Assembly: GCA_965240325.2 (NCBI GenBank)
Contig: OZ251222.1
Coordinates: forward strand, 2,976,001-3,040,000
Length of the DNA stretch: 64,000 bases
Reading direction: 5' to 3'
Origin: Rebecca billardiae RCC1528
Lineage: Eukaryota > Protista > Haptophyta
The position numbers were made by a program, and so were the translations under genes. A model generated the notes under the pieces. The model was given only the letters and a program-made list of their open reading frames with translations, was not told where the DNA came from and did not search any database. Of the stretch, positions 22,035 to 41,415 are shown piece by piece (position 1 is the stretch's first letter; the number at the start of each line of letters is the position of its first letter).

Positions 22035-22426
22035 ATATATATAGGACTAATATATATATATATATATATATATTACCTGCGCTCACTCACTCACTATAAA
22101 ATTTTAGCTTTGTGACGCCAGGCTTCACAGCACGGTGACACTGACTGTCACTGACAGGCTGATCGCCCGGACTGCCCCGGACACTCAGCGGACACTCGCT
22201 GCCTAGCTTCAAGCTAAGTCTCACGGCGCTCCGCGCTGCGCACGCACGGCCGTGAGCCGTGATCTGAGCACCCAGATGATAGGACCCTCCATGGCACACC
22301 GGCCTTTTCGCGGTCCCGCACCGACCTTTCCGATACTGTGACACGTCGGACCATGACTCGCACCCTGATGAGTGAGGTTCCCTCTCCCCCGCCCTCCAGG
22401 CCTCCACGGCCGGCGCCGCCGCGCGG

Positions 22427-24368
22427 CTACAAGAGCTGCGAGTAGCTCGAGCCGTTCCCTGCTCGAGCGCCCACGGGGCCGCGCGAGCCCGGCGAGCGCG
22501 CGCCCTGCGGCGCGACGACGAGCTGCCCGCTCTCGTCGCGCAGCAGAGAGAAGGTGCGCTGCGGCTCGAAGTGGCCGCTGTCGTTGGCACGGATCGGCGT
22601 GCGCGCGCCCGACGGCGGCGCCGTGTTGGGCGCCGAGCTCCACGCCTCCGCCGCGTCCGCCGCGCAGATGGCGAGGAAGAGGAAGAGGCACGAGAAGAGC
22701 ACCCAGCTCACGACCAGGCGGAAGCCCCAGCGGATCCCAAAGTACTCGATCACCACGCCCGAGACCGCGGGCGCGAGGAAGTAGCCGAGCACGTTGTACG
22801 CCATCATCGAGATGGCGGAGGCAAACGTGCGCACGGCCGCGGGCACGGCCGTCAGCAGGACGCCCGTGGCGGGCGCGAGCACCGCGCCGCCCACGACGAG
22901 CAGGCACCAGATCAGCACGATCACCACGACCGCGCTCTCGCTCAGCGCGATCCCTGCCGCCAGGCCGATCCCCACCACCGTGTAGTTGGCCAGCACGCGC
23001 AGGCAGCGCGAGTGGCGCGTGTACCCGCCCGCGCGGTCCACAATCCAGCCGCCTGCGAGCACGCCGATCAGAGGGCCGGTGCTGGACACGAGCGAGAAGG
23101 AGAGGACCTGCGAGCGCCGGCGGGGCGCGTGCGCGGCGTGTGAGCGCGGCGTGAGCGCGGCGTGCTCGCGCGGGGGAGCAGCGCCGCCGCCGCCTCCCCG
23201 CTCGCGCAACGCCCGGCCCAGCACGCGCACGCGCACGCGCACGCCGCGGCGCGGCGGGTGCACGCACCACTGTCGCCGGCTCCATGTGAAAATAGTCGAG
23301 CAGGAAGATGGTCACCCAGTACTGGATGCCCGAGACGATGAAGAAGATGGAGGAGAGGCACAGGAGCACCCACACGAACACGCGCGAGCGCAGCAGAATC
23401 ATCAGCATCGCGCGCACGCCCAAGACCTCGGTGGGCGCGAGCCGAGGCGACGCGGCGGGCGACGGCAGTCGGCTGCCGCTGTTGCGCTTGCGCGGGCTGG
23501 TGAGCGCGAGCTGGTCGGAGCCGACCTCGAGCGTGCGCCGCGGCACCGAGGCGAAGAGCACGCCGAGCGGCACGAGCACCGCGCCCTGCGCGATGAAAGG
23601 CCAGCGCCACCCGCCGATCAGCGCGCCGTCCGTGTGCGCGTACGAGGTGACCAGCCCGCCCGACAGGTAGCCCAGCACGATGCCGAGCGGGACGCCCACC
23701 TGCATCATCGACATGTACGTGGTCTTGGCGTGCGCGGGCGCGTACGAGTCGACCCAGACGGGGAAGTAGATCACGGCGAACGCCTGCGACAGCCCCACGG
23801 CGAAGCGCGTCGCCATCAGCAGCCACACCGTCGGCGAGAGGCCAAAGAGGATGCACGCGATCCCATTCCAGAACACGGCCGTCACGAGCACGCCGCGGAT
23901 GTTTGCGCGCTGCAGGAAGGCGCCGACGAAGGGGGAGACGATCGAGAGCGCGATGTACGGGAGCGAGCCGAGCACGCCGCAAGCCACGTAGCTCAGCGAG
24001 AAGCCGTGGCAGTCCTTGATGCACTCTCGCCTCTCGGCGCCGCCCTCAGCCGCAGGCGCCTCCGCGGCGAGGCGGTGGTGGCGCCCGCGCCTCGAGCTCG
24101 ATGCATGCGCGTCAGTCTCCGCTGGGGCCTCAACGGTCTGCGGTGCCACACCCTCGTCGACTGCTCGCACCTCGTCGGCCGTCGCCGTGAGGTTTGCCGT
24201 GGACGATGGTTGCGCCGGTGGCTCGGCGGCGCCCGCGTCGGGTTGCGCGTACTGCGGCGTGGCGCGCAGCTGGTTGAGCACGCCGGGCAGGGCGCCCGAG
24301 TCGAAGTTGGTCAGGAGGTTTGTCGTGAACACCAGAGCGAACGTCCGGCCCGGCGTCCAGAACGGCAT
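22427..24368 (-). CDS. Spinster-like MFS transporter; exons 24368-23268 and 23107-22427
   Basis: 'TNLLTNFDSGALPG', 'RFAVGLSQAFAVIYFPVWVD..AP', 'GWRWPF', 'YNVLGYFLAP'. About 12 hydrophobic segments. GT-AG intron 23108-23267 keeps the frame. Confidence 0.88.
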
Positions 24369-24605
24369 CCCGCCCGATCCCGCGCCAGGGCTCGTGCCCG
24401 ACGAATGCGGCGCTCTTGAACTTCCGCCGTCTCTGCGCGGGACCCAGTCCGGTTTCGAGCAGAGCTTCCGGACGCCCACACAGATCGGCAGGATGGCGGC
24501 GGCGGCGCCCGCCGCCCGGGGACCAAGGCCAAAAGTTGGCCAAGACTCTTGGCCAACGGACTCGCTCGTGCTGCACTGCGGGTGGGTGCGCGGCGTGGGT
24601 GCGCG

Positions 24606-27600
24606 ATGAAGCGCCCGCGCACGGACGCCGCCGACGCGGCGTCTGACTCGTCTGACTGGGCGGAGGGGGAGCGCGTGGATCTGGTCCTCCTCCAGGAGCT
24701 CGCCGCGCCAGTCGAGGAGGGCGGATGCGCCTGGCAGCCTGCGGCGGAGGCGTTGCGCGTGGCCGAGCACACAGCTGCAGCTCTCGCCGAGGGCTCGTCG
24801 CCGAGCGACGGCGAGCGCGCGCGCAAACGCGGGCGCGCGCCCGCCGTGGTGGCGAGCGAGAGCATCGACGGTTCCGTCTCGACCGGCGAGCCCACGCCGC
24901 TCGCGCTCCGGGCGGATGGCTCGGCGCGCAAACTCTCAGAGCGCATGCGAGCAGACACCACGCCCGAGGCTCGAGATCTGCCGCCAGCCGGCGCAGAGGC
25001 GAGGCTTGCGCGCGGCAGGCGCGATCCGGCGTCCCGCGTGCTGGGTGCAGACGGCAGCGACTCGTCTTCCGACGAGCACGCCCCGCCGCGGCCCCATCCC
25101 GCCCCGGGCAAGCGGCGCATCCTCTCGCTGGGCAGCGGCAGCCGCAGCGGCAGCGACGCGGATGAGCCGGCCGCCAACCGGGGCGAGCCGCCCCCGGACT
25201 CGGAGTCCGAGTCCGAGTCCGAGGTTGCGGGCGGTGGTCAGCGCGGGCTATCGCAAGAGGAGGACGACGAGGACGAGGAGGAGGACGACGAGGAGGACGA
25301 GACGGACGAGCAGCCGCACGGGAAGCGCAGGGCGGTGATCCGCGACTCGAGCGACGACTCGGACGGCGGCTCGAGCGAATTCGACGCGCGCGCCGCGCCA
25401 CGGCGGCACAAGCCGCCCGCCCCGGCCGCGGCGCGGCCGCCCGCGCCGCGGCGGGTGCGCGAGGTGGGCGTGCGCGAGCGCGCGCCGCAGCCGCGCGAGC
25501 CGCTCGCCACGTCGCGCGCGGCGGCGCCCTGGCGCGGGCGCGCGGCGGGCGAGGCCGCGGTGATGGCGGTGGAGCTGGGGCGCGGCCAGTACTCGATCGG
25601 GCACATCGCGCACATCCAGCCGGGCGCGGTGTTCCCCGACCGGCGGCAGCTGCACGACGCGGGTGTGCACCGCGGGCTGGTGCAGGGCATCTCGGGCAAC
25701 GAGGCGGAGGGCGCGCGCTCCATCGTCATCTCGGGCGGGTACGACATCGCGGACGAGGGCGACCGCTTCGAGTACACGGGCGCGGGCGGGCGCGACCTTT
25801 CCGGGAACAAGCGCACCAACTCGGTGCAGGCGTTCGACCAGAAGCTGGAGCGCGGGAACTACTGGCTCGCGGTGTCGCACGAGCAGCGCCGCCCGGTCCG
25901 CGTCGTGCGCGGCTTCCGCCTCGCGCGCGTCTCCCGCTTCGCGCCGCAGTCGGGGTACCGGTACGATGGCGTGTACTATGTGTCACGCTACTGGCGCGAG
26001 CGGGACGGCTCGGGCAACGCCATCTACAAGTTCGAGTTCGTGCGGGACACGCTGCTGTCGGACACGTGGCGCCCGCCGTGGGAGACGGCGCACGAGGTGC
26101 GCGTGCGGGACTCGCACGCGCAGACCAACTGGGGCGCGCGTGCGCGCGGCGGCGCGGCGCGCGGCGCGCGCGGCGCGGCGCGCGCCGACCAGCCTGCCGA
26201 GGGCCGAGCTCGGCGCACGCCGCCACCGCCCAGGCCGCCGCTGCCTGGCACCGCGGCCGAGCGAGCGCGATGGCCGCGCTTCATGCGGCGCGCGCTCGCG
26301 CGGCTCCGTGTGGGCGCGCCGCGCTCCGCCGGCCGCCCGTACCGCGCCTTCTTCTTCTTCGACCGCTGGTCGGAGCTGCACAGCGGGGCGGCGGCGCGCG
26401 CGCGCTCGGCGGCGGGGCGCGCGCGCTCGGCGTGGCGGCACGCGGAGGAGGACGGCAGCAGTCAGCCCGGCTCGGACGCCGACACCGCCGCCGAGTCTGA
26501 GGGGGAGGGCGGCGTGGGGAGCGGCGGCGCGCGGCGCCGCGCCGCCGGTGCTGCTCCCGCGGCTGCGCGCGCACGGCACCGCGCGCGGCTCGGCTGCACA
26601 GACTCTTCCGACTCCGCCGGCGAGGACGACGACGACGGCGACGACGGCGGCCGCGGCGACGACGGCGCGGCCGCGCGCGGCGCGTGCGCGGCCCGCGGTG
26701 GCGCGCGGAGGGGCGCGGAGGAGGAGGAGGCGCAGCTCGACGTCGTGGCGCGCGGGCTGGACGAGGACGACTCTGGCGACGACGCGTGCGCGGCGCGGGC
26801 GCGCGCGACCGCCGACGCGCGCCCGCCCCGAGCGGGGTGCGACGGCAAGGAGAACAATGCGCGGGCCAACAGCCAGGGCCGCTCCGTGCCGGCCGGCGCC
26901 GCCGCGGCAGAGCGCGCTCTGCCGGCGGAGGCGGAGGACCTCGCAGCGTCCCCGCCGGGCTCGCCCGCGCTCACGGCCGAGCGGGTTGTCGCGCGCGTCT
27001 GTGCCGAGAGCCCGCGCCGACCGACCACGACGCCGACGGCGCCATGCTCGCCGCCAGCGACGCCGCCGGCAGCGCTGGGCGCGGACGGGCCCCCGCTCGC
27101 GCGCGCGGCCGCGTCGGCGCCTCGGCCTGAGACGAGGGGCGCGCTGGAGACGAGGGGCGCGCTGGAGGCCGCGCCGCCGCCGCCGCTGCCGCGCCTGCGG
27201 CTCTCGCTCGACGCGGCCCTGGCGACGCTCGAGCGCGCGCGCTCGGAGGGCGGCGCGCGCGCCCCGCCACCGCCTCGGCACAACCTCCTCTGCCACGTCT
27301 GCGAGGACGATGCAGACGACGACGACGACGATGGTGGCGGTGGCGGTGGCGATGGCGGTGGCGATGGCGGTGGCGATGGCGGTGGCGATGGCGGTGGCGA
27401 TGGCGACAACGGCAGAGGGGGCGGCTGTGTGGAGGCGGAGGCGGCGGGCGGCGGTGGCGGCGGGCGCGGCGGCGCGCTGCCCGGCGCGTGCGGCGGCGGC
27501 GAGTGCACCACCGTGCGCACGCTGCGGTGCGCCTTCTGCCCGCGCGTCTTCCACGCGCGCTGCCTCGCCGCAGCGTACGCGGAGGAGCGCCCGGCGCGCG

Positions 27601-30600
27601 TGCAGCGGCTGTGCGCCGCGGCTGCCGCGTGCGGCGGCTGGCGCTGCCTCGTGTGCGCGGCCGAGTGCGCGTGCAGGCAGCCGCCGTGGGGCGTGGCGGA
27701 CGCGCCCGCCGCGGCGGGGGGCGCGGGCGGCGGCGCACAGGCCGTGGCGGCCGACCTTCTCCTGGCGCACGAGCGCGCAGGCTGGCTGCGCCGCGCGGCC
27801 GCTGGAGGGGCGCGCGCCCGGGCGGACGGCAGCGCTGCGGCGCGCACGGCCGCGCACGGCTCACCGCGCGCGCGCTCGCTGCGCACGCCCGAAAGCGCGC
27901 CGGGCGCGGGCGCTGGGCAGCCGCGGGGCCGGCCAGCTGGCACGCGCGCGGGCGCGGGTGCCACCGACCCAGGCCTCGCGTCTGCCACGCCGCCGCCGCA
28001 CGCCGCCGCCGAGGACGCGCGAGCGCTCGCGCGCCGCGCGCGTGCGCGGCACGACACTCAGTTTGGGCTGAGGGGCGTGCGCTGGCCTCGGCCGCCGGGC
28101 GGAGGCGGCGCGGCGCACGCGGTGGCGGGGCGCAGACGGGCGCGCGCGGCGGCGCATCCTCGGCGGGGCATCGAGGCGAGCGTGGCCGCGCTCGCCGCGC
28201 GCGCGGGCGCGGCGCGCGGCGCGGGCGGCGCGAGCGGCGCAAGACGCGGCACCGATGAGAGCGCCGCGCGCGCGCTCGCTCACGGCGACGAGGACAGCGA
28301 CGACGACGACTTCGTGCGAGCGCGCCCTGGCGGCGCTGGGCGCGCGGGCGCAGGCGGCGGCGGCGGCGAAGGTGCACAGCTCGGCGCTGTCGACTCGCCG
28401 CTCGCCAGCCCGGCGGCCGAGAGGCACGCCGCGCACGGCGGCGGCGGCGGCTGTGGCGGCGGCGCGCACGGCGCGCACGCACACAGCCCAAGCGTCGGCA
28501 GCGGGGCGGATAGTCCGCGCGCGCGCGCTGCCGCTGCCATTGGCTCGCGCCGTGCGCGCAGCAAGGCGCTGAGCGCGCCGCGCTGCGCGCCCGGCGCCGC
28601 GCGCGGCGCAGCGTCGCGCGCGCTCGACGCGCCACTCGGCGCTGCGGACGAGTCCGAGCCGGAGGCTGGCAAAGAGATCGGCGCCGCCGGCGTCGGCTCG
28701 GCCGCGTGTGCCGCCGAGGGCGACGGCGGCGCGGCCGGGCCGGAGCCGCCGCCCTCGCTGCCTCGCCGCCCGTTCCCGCGGCTGCTGCCGCCGCCGCCGC
28801 GGCTGCCGCTGCCGCCCGGGCTCCGGCTGCTCAGCCTGGGCAGCGCGTGCGCGCTCGTGCCCCCGAGCGTCGGCGGCGAGCCCCTTGTGCGCGCGCTGGG
28901 CGTGCCGGTGCGCGCCTCGGTCGAAGGGCTGACGGCCGCACTGCCGGCGCTGTTTGGGCGCGTGTGCGCGCGGCTGCAGTGGGCGCGGCAGTGGAGCGCG
29001 ATGGCTGCGGAGGCGGACGCGGGCGGGTGGGCGCGGGCGGCCGCGCCGCCGCCCTCGCCGCGTCACGCCGCCCCCGCGCACGCCGCCGCGGCGGACGACG
29101 AGCCGGAAGTGCCGCGCGCGCCGAGCGCGCGCGCGTGCGCCGAGCGCGCGCGCGAGCTCGAGCGGCAGTGCAGGCTGGCTTGGTCGGTCGTCTCGCACGT
29201 GCTGGAGCGGCGGCTGCCGCACGCGCGCGCGGAGCAGGGCGCCGCGCTCGTGGCCGCGCTGCGCGCGCAGCTGAGCGCCACCCTCGACGAGCAGCCGCCG
29301 CTTGCAGACGTAGCGCGCGCCGAGATGCAGCGTGCGCGCGGCGCGGCGCACGCGCGGCACGCGCGCGCCGGCGCGCGGCCGGCGGGCGGCGGTGGCGCGG
29401 AGGAGGGCGGCGCAGGGCCGTGGGAAGCGCAGCGGGGCGGCGCGGCGCAGCACGGCGGTGCCGCCGGCGCGTCGGCGTGCGGGCTCGAGGTGCCCGCCCT
29501 TGCGCGCAGCGCGGGCGCGCGGCTGCAGTTTGCCCTGCGCTGGCAGTGCGCGCGCTGGGTGGCGGCCATGGATGCGCACGCCGCCGCCGCCGGGCATGGG
29601 GCGCGGCCGGAGCCGAGCGCGGCGCCGCGCGCCGACGAGGGCGGCGGCGGCGGCGAGGCGGCGGCGGCGGCGGGCAGCTGCGGCGCGCTGCTCACGCCGC
29701 TCGTCGGCGCGCCGCCGTGCGACGCGCGCGCCCTCGGCGCGCGGCTGATCGCCGAGCTGCTCAGCGTGCACGCGCTCTGCCCGGGCTGGTGCGCGCCGCT
29801 GCCCGACACAACAGGCGGCGGCCGAGGCGGCGCGGGCGCGCGGCCGGCTGGGTCGGCGCCGCTGCACGAGTCCCCGACGCTCTCGGTGTGGCACGCGGCG
29901 ATGGGGCTGCTGGAGGGCAGCGCGGAGGGCGGCGGTGGCGGGGCGGATGGCGGCGCCGCCGCCGACTCGGTCGAGGGCCCCTTCTGGCGCGCGTTCGCAA
30001 AGGGCGCCGCTGCGGACGCAGACGCGTTCCGGCTGCTGCTGCGGCGGTGCGGCGGTGCGGCCGAGCGCGCGCGCGCGCCCGAGGACATGGCGGAGGCGGT
30101 GTGGGAGGCGGTGCTGTGCGTGGCGCCGCTCGGCGCGCTCGACGCGAGCGCGCGCGCGCACGCGCGCGCGTGCACGGCGCGCTCACACTGGGCGCTCGTG
30201 CGCTCGCTGCTCGAGGCCTCGCCGCTGGGCGGCTCCGCGCCCGGGCCGCGCGCGCGGGCGCTGCCTCTCACGCTGTGCGGCCGCGCGCTCGCCGCCGCGG
30301 ACGGGGAGCTGCAGGGCGCGCGCGCGCGCGCGTACACCGCGCTGCTGTGCGCGCGGTGCGAGCAGCTAGGCACCGTGTGGCCGCCATCGCTCGAGGTCGC
30401 CCTCGTCCTCTGGCGCGGCGCGCAGCGCCAGCCGCCGCCGCGTGCGGGCTCCGGCCGGCCGTGCGCGCCGTTTGCGAGCGCGCTCGGTCCGCTGGTGCGC
30501 TGGGCGCTGGGCGAGGCGCGCGCGCGCGAGGCGGCCGCGGACGCCGCGGACGCGGCGGCGGCGCGCGCGGAGGGCGGCGAGGCGGGCGCGGCGCTCGGCG

Positions 30601-33600
30601 ACGGCGCGGGCGCTCTGCTGCACACCGCGCCCCCGTCCTCGCGCGCGCTCGCGCCGCCCCCCGCGGACCCCTGGCCGCCAGACGGCGGCGCCGCCCCTGA
30701 TCTGAGCGCGCTCACAATCATGCGGCTGCTCGCGTGTCAGCTGCTGGCCATGCCGGCGCGCGCGCGGCCCCGCGCCTTCTCCGCCGTGCTGGCGACGGTG
30801 GGGCGGCCCGCGGCGGTGGTCGACTGCGCGCGCACGCACGCGCGCTCGGCGGGCTGTCTCGGCGCGCACGGCCGGCAGCTCGGCTGCGTGGCTGAGCTCT
30901 GGCTGAGCGCGGGCGCGCTCGCGCTGCTGGGAGCAGCCTGGCCCGCGCAGGCGCGCGCGGGCGCGCGCCAGCTCGCGCGCGTGTGCGCCTCGCTGCTCGA
31001 GCCCGCGGCGTCGAGCGCCGCGGCGGTGCGCGCGGTGATGGACGGTCTGCTGTGGCTTGCTGGCAGCGCGCGCGCGCACGGCGCCGACCTCGGCCCCGCC
31101 CTCGCGCGCACGCACGACCTCCTCGGCGCGGCCCTCGACGCGCACGGCGCCGCGCGCGCGCACACGGTCACCGCCGCGCTCGGCGTGCCCGGCGAGCGCT
31201 CGCGCGCGCTCGCGCTGGAGTGGGCGGAGCTGTGCGCGCACGCGCTGGGCGGGCTGCGCGAGCTCGTCGCCTCGCCGCCGCCCGCGCCGCGCGCGCGCCA
31301 GCCCGCCGAGGCCGACGTGCTCAGCGGCGCGCTCGGCCGCATCGTGTGCGCGTGCGCCGCGGCCGGCAGCGGGACAGCCGCGCTGCTGCCGCTGGCGCAC
31401 GCCGCGCTCGGGCTGATCGAGGCGGCGGTGGGCGCGGCGGCGCGGCGGCCTGCGGACGGCGCGTGCGCGCGCGCGAGCGCAGAGGACGCGGAGGCCGAGC
31501 TCGACCGGCTGATCGAGGCGCTCGACCCGGCGGTACTCGCGGACGACTCGGTCGAGGCCGCGCCGCCGCCGCCGCCGCCGCAGCCGCAGCAGCAGTCCGG
31601 CGCGCGCGCGCCCGCGTGGACCGCGGGCGAAGGCGAGCCACCGCCCGCGCAGCACGCGCGTGCGGGCGCGGCCGAGTGCGCGTACACGCAGCGGCTGCTC
31701 GTGCTGCTCGCCGAGCTCGACGCGCAGGACGCGCCCGGCCGCCCCACGCTGCGCCGCGCGCTCATGGCCCGCTGGAGCGCCACAGCCGCCGCGGCCGCGT
31801 CCGCCGCCGCGGCCAATGTCGGCGCGGCCGGCACCGCCTCGGCCGCCGCCGCCGCGTCCGACCGCCCGGCGGATGAGCTCACGTTCGCTATCGTGCGGTG
31901 CTGGGCGCGCGTCGCGGCGCTGCTCGTCGAGCACGGCGCCCGGCCGTGGGACGCGTACACCCGCTTCCTCCTCGAGCAGTCCCTCTTCGACGTGGGCGTG
32001 GGCGCGGGCTACGGAGCGGCGGGCGCGCACCCGCAGCAGCAGCACGCGGCGGGCGGCGGCGGTTGCGGCGCCGCCGGCGTCGGCGGCGCGCGCGGAGCGG
32101 GCGCGGCCGTGCCCGCGGGGTCTCGGCTGAACGCCGCGCTGCGCGCGCGGCGAGCGGTGCCCTGCGCCTTCTTCGCCGAGGCCCTCGCCTTCTCCCCGCG
32201 CGCCGCGTCGCTGCTCCTCGCGCACCCCAGCTCCCGGCCGCACGCGGTGAGTGTGTGCCTGGCGGCGCTGTGCGCGCAGCCGCCCGCGCGGGGCGCGTGC
32301 AGCCTGCTCGGCACGCTGCGGCGCGCGCCGCCGACGCGCGCCGTCTTCGGCGCGGCGGTGGGCGAGGAGGTGGAGCGCGCGGGCGACGACGGCCTCGCGC
32401 CGCGCCGCGCGAGCGTGCTGTGCGCGGTGCTCTGCCAAATGCGCAGCGAGTGGGAGGCGGCGGCCAGCGGCGCGCGCGCCCCTGCGGCGGCGGGCAGCGG
32501 CGGCGCGGGGCCGCGCGCCGCGGCCGCACCCTCCGCCAGTGCGCTCGAGGCGGAGCACGCGCGGTGGCTGCAGCGCATGCCGGCGGCGCTGATCCACGGC
32601 GTGGCCGAGGCGGACGCGCGCGCCGCCCACGGCGGCGCACCCGAGCACAGCGCCTACGTCGGCCAGTGCTTCCAGGTACGCGCACAGCACAGCGCGCGCA
32701 CAGCGCTCGCCCGCGCGCGCGGCCCGCGTGTGTGGCCGCGCCGGGCCCGCGGCGCGTGCGAGCCGTGAGCGGCCGCGAGGGTGCCCGTCGTGGCAGCAGC
32801 GCGGAGCCAGGCCGCCGCGCGAGCCCGGGCGCATCGCGCACGCCAGCCCGGCGCGCGTGGTACCCGGCTGCACGGCAGCGCAGGGGGGCCGCCAGGCGCG
32901 TCCGCTCGCGCCTCCACGCGTGTGGCTGGCTGCGGCCGCGTGACAGCTTGCCGCGTGCGCGCGCGCGCCGCCCCTTGCCGCGCGCGCGCGCGCCGCGCAG
33001 GTTGCGGCGCACACGCTGCTCGTCCTGCCGCACGCCGCGAGGGAGCACGCCCTCGAGCGGCTGCTCGGCCGCTTCTTCTCGCACGGTGAGCTGAGCTGAG
33101 CGCGCGCGGCCGACACAACGCGCCGCGCACGCGCCGCCCGCGCCGTGTGCACCCGCCAGCCTCCTCGCATGCCCCGGGGACAGCCGCCCGCCCGCCCGCC
33201 GCGACGCGCTGACCGCCCCCCGCGCGCGTGCGCCGGCGCCGCCGCCCTCGCCGCCCCCCTCGCCGCCGCCCCGCCCTGCGCGCGCGCCCTCCGCACAGCC
33301 GCGTTCGCAGGCGCGCACCAGCGCCACGCGCGCGCGCACGTCGGCAGCGCGCTCGCCGGCCTTGCCCAGCTCAGCTTCGACTCCGACCGCTACCTGGCGC
33401 GGCAGCTGGGGCAGCTGCTCGAGCTGCCGCACACGCTGGCGGCGCAGGGCGCGCACGCGGGCGCGTGCGACGCCGCCGCGCTCGACGCGCTCGTCGGCGC
33501 GCTCTGCCGCCCGGCGCCGCCGTTCGCTGCAATCGTGGGTCGGCTGCGCACCTACTGCCTGCTGGGCTCGGTCCTGCCCGCCGCTCGCGAGGCGCTGCTG

Positions 33601-34479
33601 GCGTTTTCGCCGCCGCCCGTCGGCGGCGCGGCGGCACACGGCGGCGCGGCCGGCGCGCCGGCCGCGCGCACCGCGGCGCGCGCGAGCCGGTGCGCTCACT
33701 TTGCCGCCCGGCTGCTCAAGTCGAGTCCTGCGCTTCGCCCGGCCGAGGGCGCGGCGTGGCCGCGCGTGTGCGCCGTCCTGTGCCAGCTCCTGTCCGTCCG
33801 GCCGGTGCACGCGCTGCTCGTGCCTGCGCGCAGCTGGCTGTATGCTGCGCTGCGGGCGCTGCTCGGCGCGCGCGCGGAGCAGGTGGGGGCGGCCGGCGCT
33901 GCCGCCGGCGCCGCCCTCGTCGTCGAGCAGATCGTCAGCAGCGCCGCGCGCGCGAGCGGCGCCGCCCCCGCCGCCGGGCCGGACGACGTGGCGGGCTCGC
34001 TGCTGATCACGCTCGCGTCGCACTGCCTGCACGACCTGTGGTGCTTGCTCGCCTCCTCGCTGAGCGCGTCGCAGCACGCGCCGACGCTGCGCCAGCTGTG
34101 GGACGGGAAGCGCGCCGCGCTGCCCGCCGCGCCGCAGCTCCAGCAGCATGCGCTCACGCTGTCGGGCTCGCTCGGCGGCGCGTGGCAGCCGGCTGACGCG
34201 AGCTCGGCGCGCGCGCACGTCGAGCAGGGCAGCGCCACGCGCACGCTCGTGCAGGGCATCTGTGCCGCGCTCGACGCAGTGTGCGCCGTGGAGCAGCGGC
34301 TGCCGAGCGCGCACGCGCGCGCTGTGATCGCGCGCGCCGTGGTCGCGCTGCACGAGGGCGTGCAGGTGCAGCGCGGGCTGGTCTCTCGGCAGCTGGACAC
34401 GCATACGTGCTTCGAGCATGCGCAGGTCTCCGCCGTCGTCGCTCTCATCCAGCGCGAGAAGCAGCTCGACAGCGCCTGA
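24606..34479 (+). CDS. ~3100-aa protein with SRA/YDG domain, PHD-like finger and Mus7/MMS22-like helical region; exons 24606-32675, 33001-33085, 33299-34479
   Basis: SRA 'GVHRGLVQGISG..SIVISGGY..YTGAGGRDLSGNKRT..DQKL..PVRVVRG..GYRYDGVY'. Finger 'CHVC...CAFCPRVFHARC...WRCLVC'. Mus7-like 'EAVWEAVLCVAPLGALD..HWALVRSLL..YTALLCARC..L..VW'. The two introns keep the frame; further in-frame introns cannot be excluded. Confidence 0.75.
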
Positions 34480-35014: not shown

Positions 35015-35530
35015 TGTCAAAAGCCCAAGGCAGCCATTGGCGCCATTCCCCAGCTCGAGGTTTCAATCTCAAGGCGCTGAGCAATTCTAAGCGCCACCAT
35101 GCTGAGGCTTCATTCCAATTCAAAACCTTATCATCGACCTCAACTGTCGGTTTTATTCACGTCCAGTGCACAAATTCATTCATCATCATTCATCGTGCAT
35201 TTCATAATGGCCAACAAGCCCAACAAGCGTCGCGGAACAATCCAGGAATCAAAGCTCCTGAGATGTTCTCAAGCCTTCGCAGGGCAATGCACTATCAGAT
35301 CATTCCGAGAACGTGCCTTCGCAATCAGAAGCCGAGAAGCATCTCCAAACTTTCTAATCACGAAAGTTCTGGGATGAGTCCTTCGTGAGAACCGCCTACA
35401 AAAGTTTTTCTCAGCGATCTGGAGCTACACCAGCCACACAACAAAACCGAACTGATCAGCAAGCAGGGCCAGACCCCTGCGCCACCATCGCCAAAGAGCG
35501 AACCTCCGCCAGCGCACGAAGTGCCAATCA
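35015..35530 (+). repeat. 5' LTR
   Basis: TGTCAAAAGCC...GTGCCAATCA, repeated at 41423-41938. Confidence 0.97.
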
Positions 35531-38500
35531 TGAGCTCATGGGAGCTTCGCGGCGGACAACGTGGGAACACACCGCGCGGACGCGCGCGGTTTCACCCGAA
35601 CTCGAAGGTCGACATCCGCGAGGATTTGACCGACGACACCACCAGACCGGCGGCGCAGCAGCCAAAGCGCGCGTCACGCGACCGACCGGAACGCAACCAC
35701 TCTCGACCTTCGCAGCAGCCGCGAGGCGAGAGGACGCGTACTTCGAACGAGCAGCTGCGCTCGTTCAAGAACCTCGACTACCGCTTCGGACATCCCCCGC
35801 GGAGCGAGCAAGACCACAACCTCAGCGGCCGCGACGGCAAAGCCCAGCGACAACGCGTACTACAGGTCAAGCGCCGCAAGTGGCGCTTCAAGGTCAACAA
35901 GGACTCCAACCACGCACCCGACGACGGGGCGTGGAGAGCGGAGCGCACAGAGCCACCCAGCGCCGCGTCTGCGCTGCGGGACCCGCTCCAGCCGCGGGGT
36001 CACAACCACCAAACCTCGCAACGCGAGGCCAAACGCGGCGCGCGCACGCGCACCGCGCACGCGCAAAGTATCCCCACGCTGATTCCCAGCGCGCGTCAGA
36101 CACAGGGACGACAGTCGGCGACCGACTCGATCCCATATGTCCCCTCCTTCACGTTCCAGATTCTCCCTTCCGTCTATGCGGGCGGCTGGGACTCTACGCC
36201 CGCCTACAAGGGCGCGGCGACAACGCCTAACCAGTGGAGTGAGATTGATGACGATGATCCAGCGTCGTGCCAGCCGTGCGACAATCAGTCGTGCACATCG
36301 AGGCATTGCCTTCTTGAGTGCAACATCTGTGGGATGGGCAGAGTCTGCAGCTACCGATGCGCAGACGCCATCCAGGTTCAGCATCAGCTCGAATGTGAGC
36401 AGATCATCCAGTTTGCAGCGATGAACGATGGGATTGACATCGATGATGATGGCATTCACGTCCACCAACAGGACGGACCCGTCGCAGCGGCTGATCGCCG
36501 CAGCCTGAGCGTCGTGAATGACGCAGGCGCCAGCCTCGATGATATTTGCCCTTGGCGGCCATCTAAACGATGCACTATCTACTCGGGAGGCTTCATCGCA
36601 GCAGCCGCAGAGCGGCATCAAGGTCACAACTACACAGTTGGAGACTATGTGCGGGAAAGGGACGAGCTTCACCAAAGCAAGTTTGATCTCATGTTCCATT
36701 GTAACGACGCACTCCTACAGCCAGGTGTCGCATGCTTACTGCACGACGAGTTCTATGGGCTGACTTCTGAAGCAGGCGAGGGACACTCGCCAGCTGACGA
36801 CGGTCCACCTGGACATGGCACAAACTACCCGCCTGCCGCGACTGGCGCCGACAACAGCGCACAGCAGAGCAGCGATGGGGACGAGTCCTCTACGTCGGAC
36901 ATTGACAGCTATGCCACAGCAGAGGACCACATTGAGACAAGCTCGCCCCACGCGTCACCGCGAACGCGCAGAAATGGAAGCGAAGCTTGCACCTACTTGC
37001 CCGACGCACATGCAATGATGGCTGTGCAGACAAGCCAGCCCGGCGTCGGAAGCTACAAGCTGACGAATTTCTTCACAATCAAATCGAAAATGGCTATCCA
37101 CGGAGCGATCAAGGACGCAGTCACCGAGGTCAAGGCTTCCTACAAGGGAAGAGCGACCGACACTACGTCGTCCATGGTCACCCTCGTCGAGGCCAGGCTC
37201 TCCGGATACGCGCTGGCCGAGGCAGCCGTGTGGACAGCCGAAAATGCTATTCGGGAACCTTACGCAACCGCATTCGCAAACATGGACGCGGACACCACCA
37301 TCATGCAGATGACGATCGTCTACGAGCGATCGGTGGAAGTACTTTTCAAGCGTATCAAGGACATGATGCTGCCAAGTCTCTTTTCGTACCTCGAGTCGAA
37401 AAGGCACATCGTGAACCCGAATGAGAATTTCCTGAATTTACATACTCTGCTCGAAATCTTCGAGCACGAGCTGAACGTATCGACCATGTCGGAGCTCCGG
37501 GCTGAGTTCAAGAAGCTCTACCCGGACCGACCGACCCCGGTGAGCGGCCCTGAGATGATCAAGCAAACGGTGGAGATGGTACGCGCATCACGCTATCGAG
37601 AGCTAGACGACGCCACACTCCTCGTGTTCAAGCTGTACAATGGGATGCACGAGCACCCAGAGGTCTACTCGACCGTCATCTCTATTTACGGTTCAATGTC
37701 GCCCCAGCAATGCGTGGCGCAGACCGAACAGCTCACCGCCCAGATCGAGGACGCATACAGGCGTTGGACTCAGTCGCCCAAGGGACGACAGGCAACGCAA
37801 CGTGACCCCAAGCGGGGCGGTCCCGCGCACGCTCTCAATACTGAGGAGGCGGACCGCCGACAACCAGCAGTCACGTGCTCGCATTGCGGACTACGCAATC
37901 ACACCGCAGAACGGTGCTGGAAGCTACATCCAGACTTGCGGCCACCCAGGCCGCCCGGTGCACCAAAACAGGGCAACTTCAAGCCGCCCGCCGAGCCCGG
38001 CAGGTATGACGGCAAGTTCATCAAGGTACCTCCGCCCCCCAAGTGGGCGGGGAGGCCGCGAGCCCAGATGGTGCAAGACGAGGACATCGACCCGGAACCC
38101 GATGACGCAGATCTCGAGCCGACGCAATACGCGTATCTGGACTCGGGCGCGTCCCAATCATTTGTCGATATCAACCTCGGCCTGCTACACAATGCTCATC
38201 CGATCAGCATGTCTGTCAAGGTCGCCAAGCGCGACATTGAGCTACACGCATCCAAGGCAGGCGACATGTACGTATACTTACTCGACGCCGACTCAGACAC
38301 AACCGTGCCGGTGTGCCTGGAAAACGTCGTCGGAGTCGAAGATCTCGATACTACTCTCTTTTCAGTCAACGCGTTCGCCGCGGCCGGAATGGCTGTGGTG
38401 TTCGACGAACGACCATACATCCGCATCGGCCCCAAGAGGGTTCATTTGCGCCCCGACAACACTGTCGGATTCAAGGCAGTCGTACCCAAGGCAGAGACAG

Positions 38501-41415
38501 CCATGCCGGCCACCGCGGACGACATGCCACCAGACGTCGACCCGATCAAGAACGGTCGAAAGATCACGCTCTGGCAATCCAGACTAGGATACGCCGATAT
38601 CAAGCGTGTACGCGCAACCTACCGCGCGAACGACAAGATGTCGGAGGCATCGCCCTGCACGTACCAGCCCTCCGACATTGCCAAGTTCAAAGCTAAGCCG
38701 TTCCCGGGCACACGTGAGAGGACAACTCGACCGCTCGAGATGCTCCACAACGATGTCATCGGGCCCATCAACGGGCTGCCCGCCAAGACTCCAAGGTGGG
38801 GAACTCTATTCATCGATGATTTTTCCGGATACATGCGAGTCCTTCGCAGGTACGACATGCTATGCAACTACATGTCGCCCCCCCACACGCAGCAGCTGAA
38901 CGGCGTCGCCGAACGTGGCCTCGGAGTCATCATGAATGACGCCAGGACAATGCTGTACCTCTCAGGCGTACACCACAAATGGTGGCATTGGGCAGCCAAG
39001 TGCGCTGCCGCGCAACGCAACCTGATGAGCAAGCATCCTACCAGCGATGGCAAGCTGGTTTCGCCGCACGAGTTGATGTTTGGCACCTCGCCCGGGCCCT
39101 TCCTGCAAAAGCTGAGAGTCTGGGGCTCGCCCTGCATCTACCTCGTACAGTCGATCAACAAGCAGAACAAGCTACTCCCGCGCGCGCGGGAGGGCATCTT
39201 ATTGGGATACGGATTTGACGGTATCTTCGAGCGAGGCGCGATCAAGCGATCGCACGGATACATCGTTTTGAGTGCCGACGACGGGAAAATCGTCATCACT
39301 CGGCATTTCAAGTTCAACGAGCAAGTCATTTTGGATCGAATCTCTACGCATTTCAAGGAGATCCGCGAAATTCGGGACCCCCTGCTGGCGTGGAGCGCTC
39401 GGCGACCCCCTCAAGGTGCAGATGCTGGTAAGACCCATGACAGCAACACCAACGAGGAGGGCGGCGAAGAGTTTGCCAGCAGCAGCAGCGACGCCGACAG
39501 CGGCTCCGAGCGCGGAGGAGACGATCCACCATCGCCGGACGAGAAATCAGACGACGATGACGACGAGGATGACGGGGACGGCCCCGACGACGACGAGAAG
39601 GGAGATGACGGCGACGACGACGGTGATGAAGACGGCCCCGGAGCTGGAGGCGGACCATCGCCCAGCAACGCGCCGCCGCAGCCGAAGCAGCCTCCTCCCT
39701 CCGCCGATCGCCGCCCACAGCGGACCCGCAACATGACTGGCAAGTCATACTTCCCGTCGACGCGGCGCGCGCGCGCGCGCGCGCAGCTCGCGCAGCTCGC
39801 ATCAGATATCCCGGTACCTACATCGTTCAAGGAAGCGATGGAGAGCAAGCAAGCATCCGATTGGACAAGGGCTATCATGGAAGAATACGAGGCCCACGAC
39901 AGACTGGGCACATTCACGCCCGTCGTTGTTCCCAAAGGGAAAGCAATTATCCCATCGAAGCTGGTCTTCAAGGTCAAAGCCAATCCAGATGGTACCATCG
40001 AACGGTACAAGGCAAGATTGGTTGGTCAAGGCTTCCGCCAGATTCAAGGAGTCAATTACGACGAGGTATTCTCGCCTACTATCCGGTACGAGAATGTACG
40101 CCTCCTATTGGCACTGACGACAGAGCTACGAACACCAGAAAGACCTTGGATCATCCACTCCGCGGACGTGAGTACGGCGTACCTCCAAGCCCCTTTGGAG
40201 GACGGCCTGAAGATCTACACTACGCTACCCCCGCTGTACCCGTGTACTCTCAAGCCACCTGAGGGGCATGTGGTCGCGGCCGACTGGGATATGGCCCTTC
40301 CAGGATTTAAGCAGAGCGGCAGACGATGGCACCTCCGCCTCAGCCAGAAACTGCGAGAGAAAGGATTCAAGAAACTCGCACAGTCGGAGTGCATCTTCGT
40401 CCGCATCTCCGGAGACATCATCGACGTCATCGCAGTGTACGTGGACGATCTGCTTATTCTGAGCAGCTCCCCCGACAGCGCAAGGCCCAGCTCGATTATT
40501 GAGGAAATTCGAAAAGAATTTACCCTCCGGGATTTGGGACCAGCAACGACGTTCCTGGGCATGAATATCACCCAGGGGCCCAAGTCGACGACTATCTCCA
40601 TGTCACAGTACATCACTGATCTCCTCAAGAGGCACGACATGAGCGACATTACGCCCGTCGACAACCCGTGCAGATCGGCAGCAGAGCATCCGACAGCAGT
40701 CGAGACAGACGATTCATCATCGTGCTCGTCGGAGGAATCAAAGACCTACCGAGCAATTGTCGGAGCGCTACTATTCATCATGAACACCTGCCGACCCGAC
40801 ATCAGCTACGCAGTCAACATGTTGGCAAGGTACATGGCAAGCCCAAGTTCGAACGACCTTAAAGGTGCCAAGCGAGTGCTCAGGTACTTGGCCGGGACAA
40901 AGAATTCCGGCATCACTTTCAAATCAACACCTACTCAGCCACGGACGGAGATGTTTGTGGACTCGGATTGGGCCAACGATACAAAGGATCGCCGCTCGAC
41001 AGGAAGCTATATCTACTTCCACGCAGGCGGCCCAGTATCGTGGCGCACCTTCAAGCAGTCAATCACAACCCTCTCATCATGTGAGGCCGAATATGTCGCT
41101 CTCGCGGAAGGAGCCAAAGAGGCAGTTTACCTACGCGACATCATCAGCGATATTCTCAATATTCCCAAGACGCCCATTGTGATCCATGAGGACAACAAGG
41201 GGGCGATTGATCTCTCGAAGAACAGCATTCATCATAAGCGCACCAAGCACATCGACGTACGACACCATTTTATTCGAGATTGTGTCGACCTCGGTGCAGT
41301 CAACATTATCAAGGTACACACATCGGAAAACATCGCCGATTGTCTTACCAAGGCGCTACCCAAGGACAAGTTTGCAAAATTCCGAGACATCATGGTTGCA
41401 CCAGTTTCGAATTGA
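35530..41415 (+). CDS. Copia Gag-Pol polyprotein with long N-terminal extension
   Basis: Zinc knuckle CSHCGLRNHTAERC, protease YLDSGAS, integrase HNDVIGP..NGVAER, RT 'YKARLV..YVDDLL', RNase H 'FVDSDWA..EAEY..EDNKGAI..ADCLTK'. Confidence 0.93.
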   Translation: MSSWELRGGQRGNTPRGRARFHPNSKVDIREDLTDDTTRPAAQQPKRASRDRPERNHSRPSQQPRGERTRTSNEQLRSFKNLDYRFGHPPRSEQDHNLSGRDGKAQRQRVLQVKRRKWRFKVNKDSNHAPDDGAWRAERTEPPSAASALRDPLQPRGHNHQTSQREAKRGARTRTAHAQSIPTLIPSARQTQGRQSATDSIPYVPSFTFQILPSVYAGGWDSTPAYKGAATTPNQWSEIDDDDPASCQPCDNQSCTSRHCLLECNICGMGRVCSYRCADAIQVQHQLECEQIIQFAAMNDGIDIDDDGIHVHQQDGPVAAADRRSLSVVNDAGASLDDICPWRPSKRCTIYSGGFIAAAAERHQGHNYTVGDYVRERDELHQSKFDLMFHCNDALLQPGVACLLHDEFYGLTSEAGEGHSPADDGPPGHGTNYPPAATGADNSAQQSSDGDESSTSDIDSYATAEDHIETSSPHASPRTRRNGSEACTYLPDAHAMMAVQTSQPGVGSYKLTNFFTIKSKMAIHGAIKDAVTEVKASYKGRATDTTSSMVTLVEARLSGYALAEAAVWTAENAIREPYATAFANMDADTTIMQMTIVYERSVEVLFKRIKDMMLPSLFSYLESKRHIVNPNENFLNLHTLLEIFEHELNVSTMSELRAEFKKLYPDRPTPVSGPEMIKQTVEMVRASRYRELDDATLLVFKLYNGMHEHPEVYSTVISIYGSMSPQQCVAQTEQLTAQIEDAYRRWTQSPKGRQATQRDPKRGGPAHALNTEEADRRQPAVTCSHCGLRNHTAERCWKLHPDLRPPRPPGAPKQGNFKPPAEPGRYDGKFIKVPPPPKWAGRPRAQMVQDEDIDPEPDDADLEPTQYAYLDSGASQSFVDINLGLLHNAHPISMSVKVAKRDIELHASKAGDMYVYLLDADSDTTVPVCLENVVGVEDLDTTLFSVNAFAAAGMAVVFDERPYIRIGPKRVHLRPDNTVGFKAVVPKAETAMPATADDMPPDVDPIKNGRKITLWQSRLGYADIKRVRATYRANDKMSEASPCTYQPSDIAKFKAKPFPGTRERTTRPLEMLHNDVIGPINGLPAKTPRWGTLFIDDFSGYMRVLRRYDMLCNYMSPPHTQQLNGVAERGLGVIMNDARTMLYLSGVHHKWWHWAAKCAAAQRNLMSKHPTSDGKLVSPHELMFGTSPGPFLQKLRVWGSPCIYLVQSINKQNKLLPRAREGILLGYGFDGIFERGAIKRSHGYIVLSADDGKIVITRHFKFNEQVILDRISTHFKEIREIRDPLLAWSARRPPQGADAGKTHDSNTNEEGGEEFASSSSDADSGSERGGDDPPSPDEKSDDDDDEDDGDGPDDDEKGDDGDDDGDEDGPGAGGGPSPSNAPPQPKQPPPSADRRPQRTRNMTGKSYFPSTRRARARAQLAQLASDIPVPTSFKEAMESKQASDWTRAIMEEYEAHDRLGTFTPVVVPKGKAIIPSKLVFKVKANPDGTIERYKARLVGQGFRQIQGVNYDEVFSPTIRYENVRLLLALTTELRTPERPWIIHSADVSTAYLQAPLEDGLKIYTTLPPLYPCTLKPPEGHVVAADWDMALPGFKQSGRRWHLRLSQKLREKGFKKLAQSECIFVRISGDIIDVIAVYVDDLLILSSSPDSARPSSIIEEIRKEFTLRDLGPATTFLGMNITQGPKSTTISMSQYITDLLKRHDMSDITPVDNPCRSAAEHPTAVETDDSSSCSSEESKTYRAIVGALLFIMNTCRPDISYAVNMLARYMASPSSNDLKGAKRVLRYLAGTKNSGITFKSTPTQPRTEMFVDSDWANDTKDRRSTGSYIYFHAGGPVSWRTFKQSITTLSSCEAEYVALAEGAKEAVYLRDIISDILNIPKTPIVIHEDNKGAIDLSKNSIHHKRTKHIDVRHHFIRDCVDLGAVNIIKVHTSENIADCLTKALPKDKFAKFRDIMVAPVSN

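Follow-up and report, generated by a model that had tools for sequence, protein, structure and literature searches.

In a 64,000-nucleotide (nt) stretch of the haptophyte Rebecca billardiae RCC1528 (contig OZ251222.1, forward-strand positions 2,976,001 to 3,040,000; hereafter the window, in whose own coordinates all positions are given), the region 24606-34479 is probably one nuclear protein-coding gene on the + strand, with exons at 24606-32675, 33001-33085 and 33299-34479. Its predicted product of about 3,111 amino acids (aa) would carry, in order, a disordered acidic region, an SRA/YDG domain, a PHD-like zinc finger, a linker, and a strongly diverged MMS22L/Mus7 scaffold. What is new here is the architecture, which was seen once; the SRA and MMS22 domain families were both known already. 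A sequence-only reading of the same DNA had proposed this arrangement, SRA to PHD-like finger to MMS22-family helical region in one coding frame, and both the order of the domains and the continuity of the frame uphold it. That reading also knew of no description of such a protein, and neither do the databases or the literature that we searched: no report was found of MMS22 and SRA/YDG within one protein.

Domains of the predicted protein

The SRA/YDG domain, of UHRF1 type, lies at 25596-26048 on the + strand (aa 331-481 of the protein read from the ATG at 24606), where Pfam SAD_SRA (PF02182) matches with an E value of 2.3e-40 and 138.2 bits (cut-off 30.7) and covers positions 2-145 of the 148 in the profile. 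A UHRF1/VIM-type SRA had been proposed at ~25596-26045, exactly the place of this match. The nearest relatives in the PDB were the SRA domains of UHRF1 (E 6e-31), followed by UHRF2, the bacterial TagI endonuclease and plant SUVH5/6. When aligned to the mouse UHRF1 SRA chain, the domain keeps YTGaGGRDLSGNKRT, the V-x-G-I thumb (GLVQGISG, 25674-25697) and RYDGVY, with the finger GNKRT located at 25803-25817 and RYDGV at 25959-25973. From UHRF1-DNA structures, we take the thumb, the NKR finger and the YDG elements to be the parts responsible for flipping out 5-methylcytosine, holding it and recognizing hemimethylated sites. No match to RING, UBL or tandem Tudor domains was found anywhere in the protein by Pfam at E values up to 10; because these domains are absent and the finger is C-terminal to the SRA, the protein is not a UHRF1/VIM orthologue. 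A metagenome scan with the SRA domain returned six short marine contigs of the Joint Genome Institute (31-36% guanine plus cytosine, GC) with SRA domains that were ~40% identical. These contigs carry no MMS22-like sequence and were rejected as unrelated.

At the other end of the protein, we conclude from sequence comparison that the C-terminal ~1,700 aa (28831-34476 on the + strand, counted after splicing) belong to the Mus7/MMS22L family as a strongly diverged member, recognizable through an intermediate that is itself verified by Pfam. An exhaustive HMMER search (phmmer) with nt 29166-32765 against 1.84 billion cluster representatives produced a sole match, with an E value of 1.8e-7, to EP00698_P001637 (hereafter P0004), a protein of 2,101 aa from the transcriptome of the malawimonad Gefionella okellyi. 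In Pfam, P0004 scores above threshold with Mus7 at residues 1226-1690 (E 3e-15) and with MMS22L_N at residues 975-1052 (E 4e-8), and shows a weak match to MMS22L_C. The best-conserved block, at 29964-30446 on the + strand, corresponds to about positions 287-368 of the MMS22L_N profile and to P0004 residues 975-1128, so that it aligns where Pfam MMS22L_N matches P0004. By BLASTP, block and P0004 align with an E value of 9e-16 and 29% identity over ~160 aa, sharing the pattern PFW..F, E.VW, VAPL, W.LV..LL..SPL, VW.P and LW..QR..PP.A. In a shuffle control, the real alignment scored 45.1 bits, compared with at most 1.4 bits in 60 local shuffles and less than 0 for the reversed sequence. The Mus7/MMS22-like motifs pointed out in the sequence-only reading at ~30087-30385 fall inside this block, and the match to P0004 supplies the MMS22 similarity of the C-terminal region on which that reading had let its interpretation depend.

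A second conserved motif, at 31863-31979 on the + strand, corresponds to about positions 421-458 of the Pfam Mus7 profile. Here a second BLASTP high-scoring segment pair joins nt 31863-31958 to P0004 residues 1514-1545, in the same order as the first and within the Mus7 match of P0004. Three comparisons agree on the place of this motif: the window protein with Pfam Mus7 421-458, the window protein with P0004 1514-1548, and P0004 with Mus7. The two motifs follow one another as they do in P0004, the spacing from motif to motif and from motif to C-terminus is alike in the two proteins, and exon 3 also matches P0004 weakly where this order would place it, at residues 1736-1817 in the MMS22L_C region of that protein. 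Feature searches in the ESM Atlas recovered only generic helical-repeat families with low recognition (MEI1, LINES, Tra1 and HEATR5A). Searching PDB sequences with the C-terminal region or P0004 as query found no MMS22L structure, so the family could not have been named by fold comparison with the PDB.

Between these two parts, a PHD-like Cys4-His-Cys3 finger was recognized at the level of motifs at 27291-27656 on the + strand. Its ligands are found in CHVC (27291-27302), CAFCPRVFHARC (27528-27563) and (GG)WRCLVC ending at 27656 (WRCLVC, 27639-27656), giving the pattern CxxC, CxxCPxxFHxxC, GxWxCxxC, in which the CPxxFHxxC core is typical and a Trp stands two positions ahead of Cys6. The first loop, between Cys pairs 1 and 2, has ~75 residues, compared with the usual ~8-25; another possible first ligand pair, CGGGEC at 27489-27506, lies closer. 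Within the loop, an in-frame microsatellite on the + strand, (GGTGGCGATGGC)x6.1 at 27333-27405 (period 12, 98% matches by Tandem Repeats Finder), codes for a Gly/Asp insert that looks like a recent repeat expansion because the microsatellite is near-perfect. This 12-nt repeat is likely to be length-polymorphic between strains. Thus, of the PHD-like finger split by a Gly/Asp insert that had been proposed at ~27280-27675, the Cys/His pattern and the insert are present, but the finger falls below every family threshold. Among other finger families in Pfam, PHDvar_NSD reached an E value of 0.13 and C1 an E value of 0.09; PDB matches to PHF24, KIAA1045, ZMYND and FYVE fingers were weak (E 0.1-2; the best PHD/FYVE matches 0.1-0.4, PHD fingers taken alone 0.2-2), and a single-sequence AlphaFold2 (AF2) model was poor, with a predicted local distance difference test (pLDDT) score of 45. 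At this motif level, the element would be a PHD-like treble-clef zinc finger at most.

Gene model and continuity of the frame

Because open frames are common in DNA this rich in GC, and openness alone proves little, codon-position statistics were used for the gene model. GC content between 24.6 and 34.5 kb is 74-83% in 2-kb windows, compared with a median of ~67% for the whole 64,000 nt (100-nt windows), and open reading frames (ORFs) of 600-976 aa also occur in the non-coding and antisense frames of the region. The antisense and alternative-frame ORFs of 624-976 aa were rejected as genes, as Pfam matched none of them and their codon periodicity is wrong. From ~25.0 to 32.7 kb, one + frame stands out, with a third-position GC of 0.90-1.00 and its lowest GC at the second position; codons in this frame (frame 0) begin at coordinates divisible by 3. 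Past 33.0 kb the signal moves to another + frame (frame 1). A codon-usage log-odds model, with the clearest parts of the gene as its training set, gave the same picture as position GC and preferred frame 0 along nearly all of exon 1.

Exon 1 (24606-32675, + strand) has 2,690 codons from the ATG at 24606 to the donor CAG/GTACGC (the slash marks the splice boundary); the two remaining + frames contain 18 and 10 stops over this length, frame 0 none. Intron 1 (32676-33000, + strand, 325 nt) is of GT-AG type, with donor ttccag/GTACGCGC and acceptor GCGCAG/gttgcg; it carries no coding signal, and the phases at its two ends match in the change from frame 0 to frame 1. Exon 2 (33001-33085, + strand) is only 85 nt long and is flanked by frame-1 stops at 32941 and 33097. 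Intron 2 (33086-33298, + strand, 213 nt), also GT-AG, has donor cgcacg/GTGAGCTG, acceptor CCGCACAG/ccgcgt and a consistent phase, and leads into exon 3 (33299-34479, + strand), which is identified by the frame-1 codon model and periodicity and ends with the stop codon at 34477-34479. Both introns are free of codon signal and of three-base periodicity; other frame-compatible acceptors are present at 32947 and 33310/33311. The spliced coding sequence of 9,336 nt is divisible by 3, has a stop only at its end and translates to 3,111 aa.

The "one uninterrupted frame" of the sequence-only reading therefore holds in part. The SRA, the PHD-like finger and the MMS22-like motifs that it named all lie within the 8,070 nt of stop-free exon 1, and frame 0 stays open from 24417 to 32766; over the full span of 24606-34479 the statement fails, as frame 0 has a stop at 32766 and the final 1.2 kb is read in another frame by way of the two GT-AG introns. 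The coding signal in exon 1 dips at 26125-26270 and 27775-28075. At these places low-complexity coding is preferred to hidden introns, since neither dip has a strong donor and both are read through without a shift of frame; an in-frame intron inside exon 1 may be the alternative there. Ahead of the SRA domain, the N-terminal region (24606-25595, + strand) is acidic and Ser/Ala/Arg-rich, and from its translation, composition and motif positions it is probably disordered. Basic motifs resembling nuclear localization signals are located at 24609-24620 (KRPR), 25107 and 25320 (both GKRR), and Pfam searches of this region gave only low-complexity noise matches.

The join between the two halves of the protein is the Ala/Gly/Arg/Pro-rich linker at 27676-28830 (+ strand), which lies between the finger and the MMS22-like module, and it is here that the locus could instead be divided into two adjacent genes of the same strand: an SRA-PHD reader, followed by an MMS22L-like protein starting at the ATG at 29001, with the joining frame open because stops are rare at 84% GC. 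Chance ORFs of 600-976 aa do occur in non-coding frames of the region, as described above, and the chance of an open frame across the linker alone is ~0.12 at this composition. Within and around the linker, 300 nt (27775-28075) are without significant coding signal, and the ATG at 29001 sits just upstream, by ~35 codons, of the projected start of MMS22L_N homology; the Gefionella homologue, moreover, has no SRA domain. Such a division would nevertheless leave the upstream gene without a stop codon in its own frame, and it would not account for the periodicity of 28076-28830, which follows frame 0 (p 1e-6 for this part alone, p 6.6e-9 for the whole linker, and no such signal in the two introns) while lying upstream of the only usable ATG. 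Start codons are scarce throughout: the + strand between 27400 and 29400 has ATGs only at 27400, 28255, 29001 and 29325, frame 0 has none between 26283 and 29001, and from the finger to 29001 the sole ATG in any + frame is that at 28255, whose frame stops at 28570. Stops in the linker number zero in frame 0 and two in each of the other + frames. The linker is flanked on either side by coding sequence without a change of frame, the codon model favouring frame 0 in both places, and GC per 100 nt never drops below 0.62 inside the gene (0.84 in the linker), unlike the collapse from ~0.76 to 0.42 within 200 nt after its stop codon. We therefore regard two genes as unlikely and a single coding unit, judged from codon periodicity, frame, start codons and composition, as probable; an extra isoform from an internal start may exist alongside the full-length protein.

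Besides the weak stretch of the linker, the odds of its open frame and the position of the ATG at 29001, several further observations weigh against a fusion of this composition. The direct match of the window protein to Pfam Mus7 (PF09462; nt 31875-31979, profile 421-458) reached only 14 bits compared with a cut-off of 23 (E 0.017-0.024), and MMS22L_N and MMS22L_C (PF14910 and PF14911) had no direct match to it even at E values up to 10. An AF2 model of the MMS22L_N-like part, from a two-sequence alignment, is all helix by DSSP with a pLDDT of 37, and the PHD call is likewise sub-threshold, at 9.8 bits with Pfam PHD (PF00628) compared with a cut-off of 24 (E 1.1). The SRA, for its part, departs from mouse UHRF1 in the loop following GGY, which is one residue shorter and has Ile where UHRF1 has Asp, so that its binding preference is not readable from the sequence. 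The fusion is without RNA support, as a search for sequencing runs listed none, and neither an orthologue nor a second example was found in any protein or metagenome search, so that it has been seen in one genome. In word-index protein searches, the C-terminal piece returned nothing, with low-complexity words swamping the candidates; P0004 returned only itself; and with the full-length query the SRA region matched only three streptophyte RING/SRA proteins. This lack of relatives stems partly from limits of the searches, namely length windows, low-complexity words and the absence of the source genome from the collections.

With respect to its surroundings, the gene (26000-34400) forms a sharp, gene-sized GC island, with 82% GC compared with 52-72% in neighbouring genes and elements of the window. 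Adjoining it upstream on the minus strand is a gene for a transporter of the major facilitator superfamily (MFS) type at 22221-24770 (Pfam MFS_1 E 5e-23, plus Sugar_tr and OATP). The codon periodicity of the MFS gene switches frame near 23.2 kb, suggesting an intron, and the upstream ~250 codons of its ORF are probably non-coding; given its strand, a divergent promoter region would lie at ~24.1-24.6 kb. Directly downstream, in a region of ~59% GC, is a Ty1/copia-type retrotransposon with a long ORF at 35521-41415 on the + strand, with Pfam RVT_2 (E 5e-49), a retroviral SH3-like integrase domain, and a gag-like zinc knuckle in the translation.

Possible roles of the proposed fusion

From the functions of its domains, methylation-guided targeting of an MMS22 scaffold is a reasonable inference. 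The SRA, maybe aided by the finger on a histone tail, would bind methylated or hemimethylated CpG DNA, and the MMS22-type scaffold would thereby be anchored on methylated chromatin, either at the replication fork or behind it. So placed, the scaffold would support RAD51-dependent recovery of stalled or broken forks, as the MMS22 type does in animals and yeasts, and the built-in reader would replace or supplement a separate TONSL-like partner. A methyl-DNA reader has a plausible substrate in this lineage, because haptophytes are reported to have dense CpG methylation as well as DNMT1-like and DNMT5 enzymes (PMC9998398). In its most specific form, the proposal would have hemimethylated CpG behind the fork, and not a histone mark read by TONSL, position the MMS22 recombination scaffold, with one polypeptide coupling methylation reading to RAD51-dependent fork recovery; we offer this form tentatively, as a possibility that is more doubtful than the gene model itself. 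Two other readings, UHRF1-like maintenance and targeting to repeats or lesions, are equally compatible with the fusion.

The first of these takes the fusion as real and the protein as a UHRF1 analogue for methylation maintenance, whose MMS22 part would bring a cullin ligase to hemimethylated DNA and so replace the RING that marks H3 for DNMT1 recruitment. In budding yeast, histone H3 is ubiquitylated by Rtt101-Mms1, a cullin-DDB1-like ubiquitin ligase for which Mms22 serves as a substrate adaptor, and by its Pfam family names the Mus7/MMS22 family spans this yeast adaptor and animal MMS22L, although homology of the window protein to yeast Mms22 is at family level only. With an SRA and a PHD-like finger and none of RING, UBL and tandem Tudor, the protein resembles a UHRF1-like reader without its own ligase, and haptophytes do have DNMT1-like and DNMT5 enzymes (PMC9998398). 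Nothing in the sequence analysis, however, points to cullin or DDB1 contact, and animal MMS22L works via TONSL and RAD51 (PMC9409234); overall, a maintenance role seems improbable.

In the other alternative, the fusion is again real, and the SRA would lead the scaffold either to DNA lesions or to repeats and transposons that are fully methylated, instead of to hemimethylated nascent DNA. The UHRF1 SRA has been reported as a sensor of interstrand crosslinks, and the gene has a Ty1/copia element immediately downstream. In addition, the loop following GGY differs from that of UHRF1, as described above, and specificity for hemimethylated or fully methylated DNA is not readable from the sequence. 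The NKR finger, which in UHRF1 discriminates hemimethylated sites, is fully conserved, and we hold targeting to repeats or lesions to be very unlikely.

If hemimethylated CpG does position the scaffold, the fusion would be a natural "Rosetta stone" linking two pathways that are studied apart in animals. A natural fusion of this kind would predict that fork repair is functionally tied to hemimethylated DNA or else, under the maintenance role, that methylation maintenance is tied to an MMS22-type ligase adaptor. For scaffold targeting outside animals and fungi, fusion to a UHRF1-type reader would suggest DNA methylation as the cue.

Comparison with known systems

Compared with UHRF1 and the plant VIM-ORTH proteins, the window protein has an SRA closest to that of UHRF1, with NKR finger, thumb and YDG kept, and joined to a PHD-type finger. 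It differs in the reversed order, with the SRA before the finger, and in having no UBL, tandem Tudor or RING. With yeast Mms22 and Schizosaccharomyces pombe Mus7 it shares Pfam family PF09462, through the match of 31875-31979 to profile positions 421-458 that is below the gathering cut-off; to our knowledge, no SRA or PHD occurs in these yeast proteins.

Animal MMS22L belongs to the same Mus7/MMS22 family as the C-terminal ~1,700 aa, by way of P0004, and is comparable in module length and all-helical build, the latter judged for the window protein from a low-confidence model. The window protein, by contrast, is very diverged and has ~1,400 extra N-terminal residues with DNA/chromatin reader domains of its own, whereas animal MMS22L depends on TONSL, which reads H4K20me0 and H3.1, to reach newly replicated chromatin, and itself contacts RAD51 and RPA-bound single-stranded DNA (PMC9409234). 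In plants, TONSOKU is present and a clear MMS22L is reportedly lacking (PMC9409234).

The only detectable homologue, P0004 of Gefionella okellyi, comes from an unrelated lineage, the malawimonads, and differs in having no SRA or PHD. Like the window protein, it has a long N-terminal extension ahead of the MMS22 module, in this case of ~950 aa. A weak Myb/SANT-like match (E 0.004, below threshold) was also noted at its residues 274-325. The two proteins together hint that N-terminal DNA/chromatin-binding additions recur in protist MMS22 proteins. The window protein also illustrates that MMS22 homologues of protists can diverge beyond the reach of Pfam, and that reader domains particular to a lineage may be attached to them, as with the weak Myb-like match in Gefionella.

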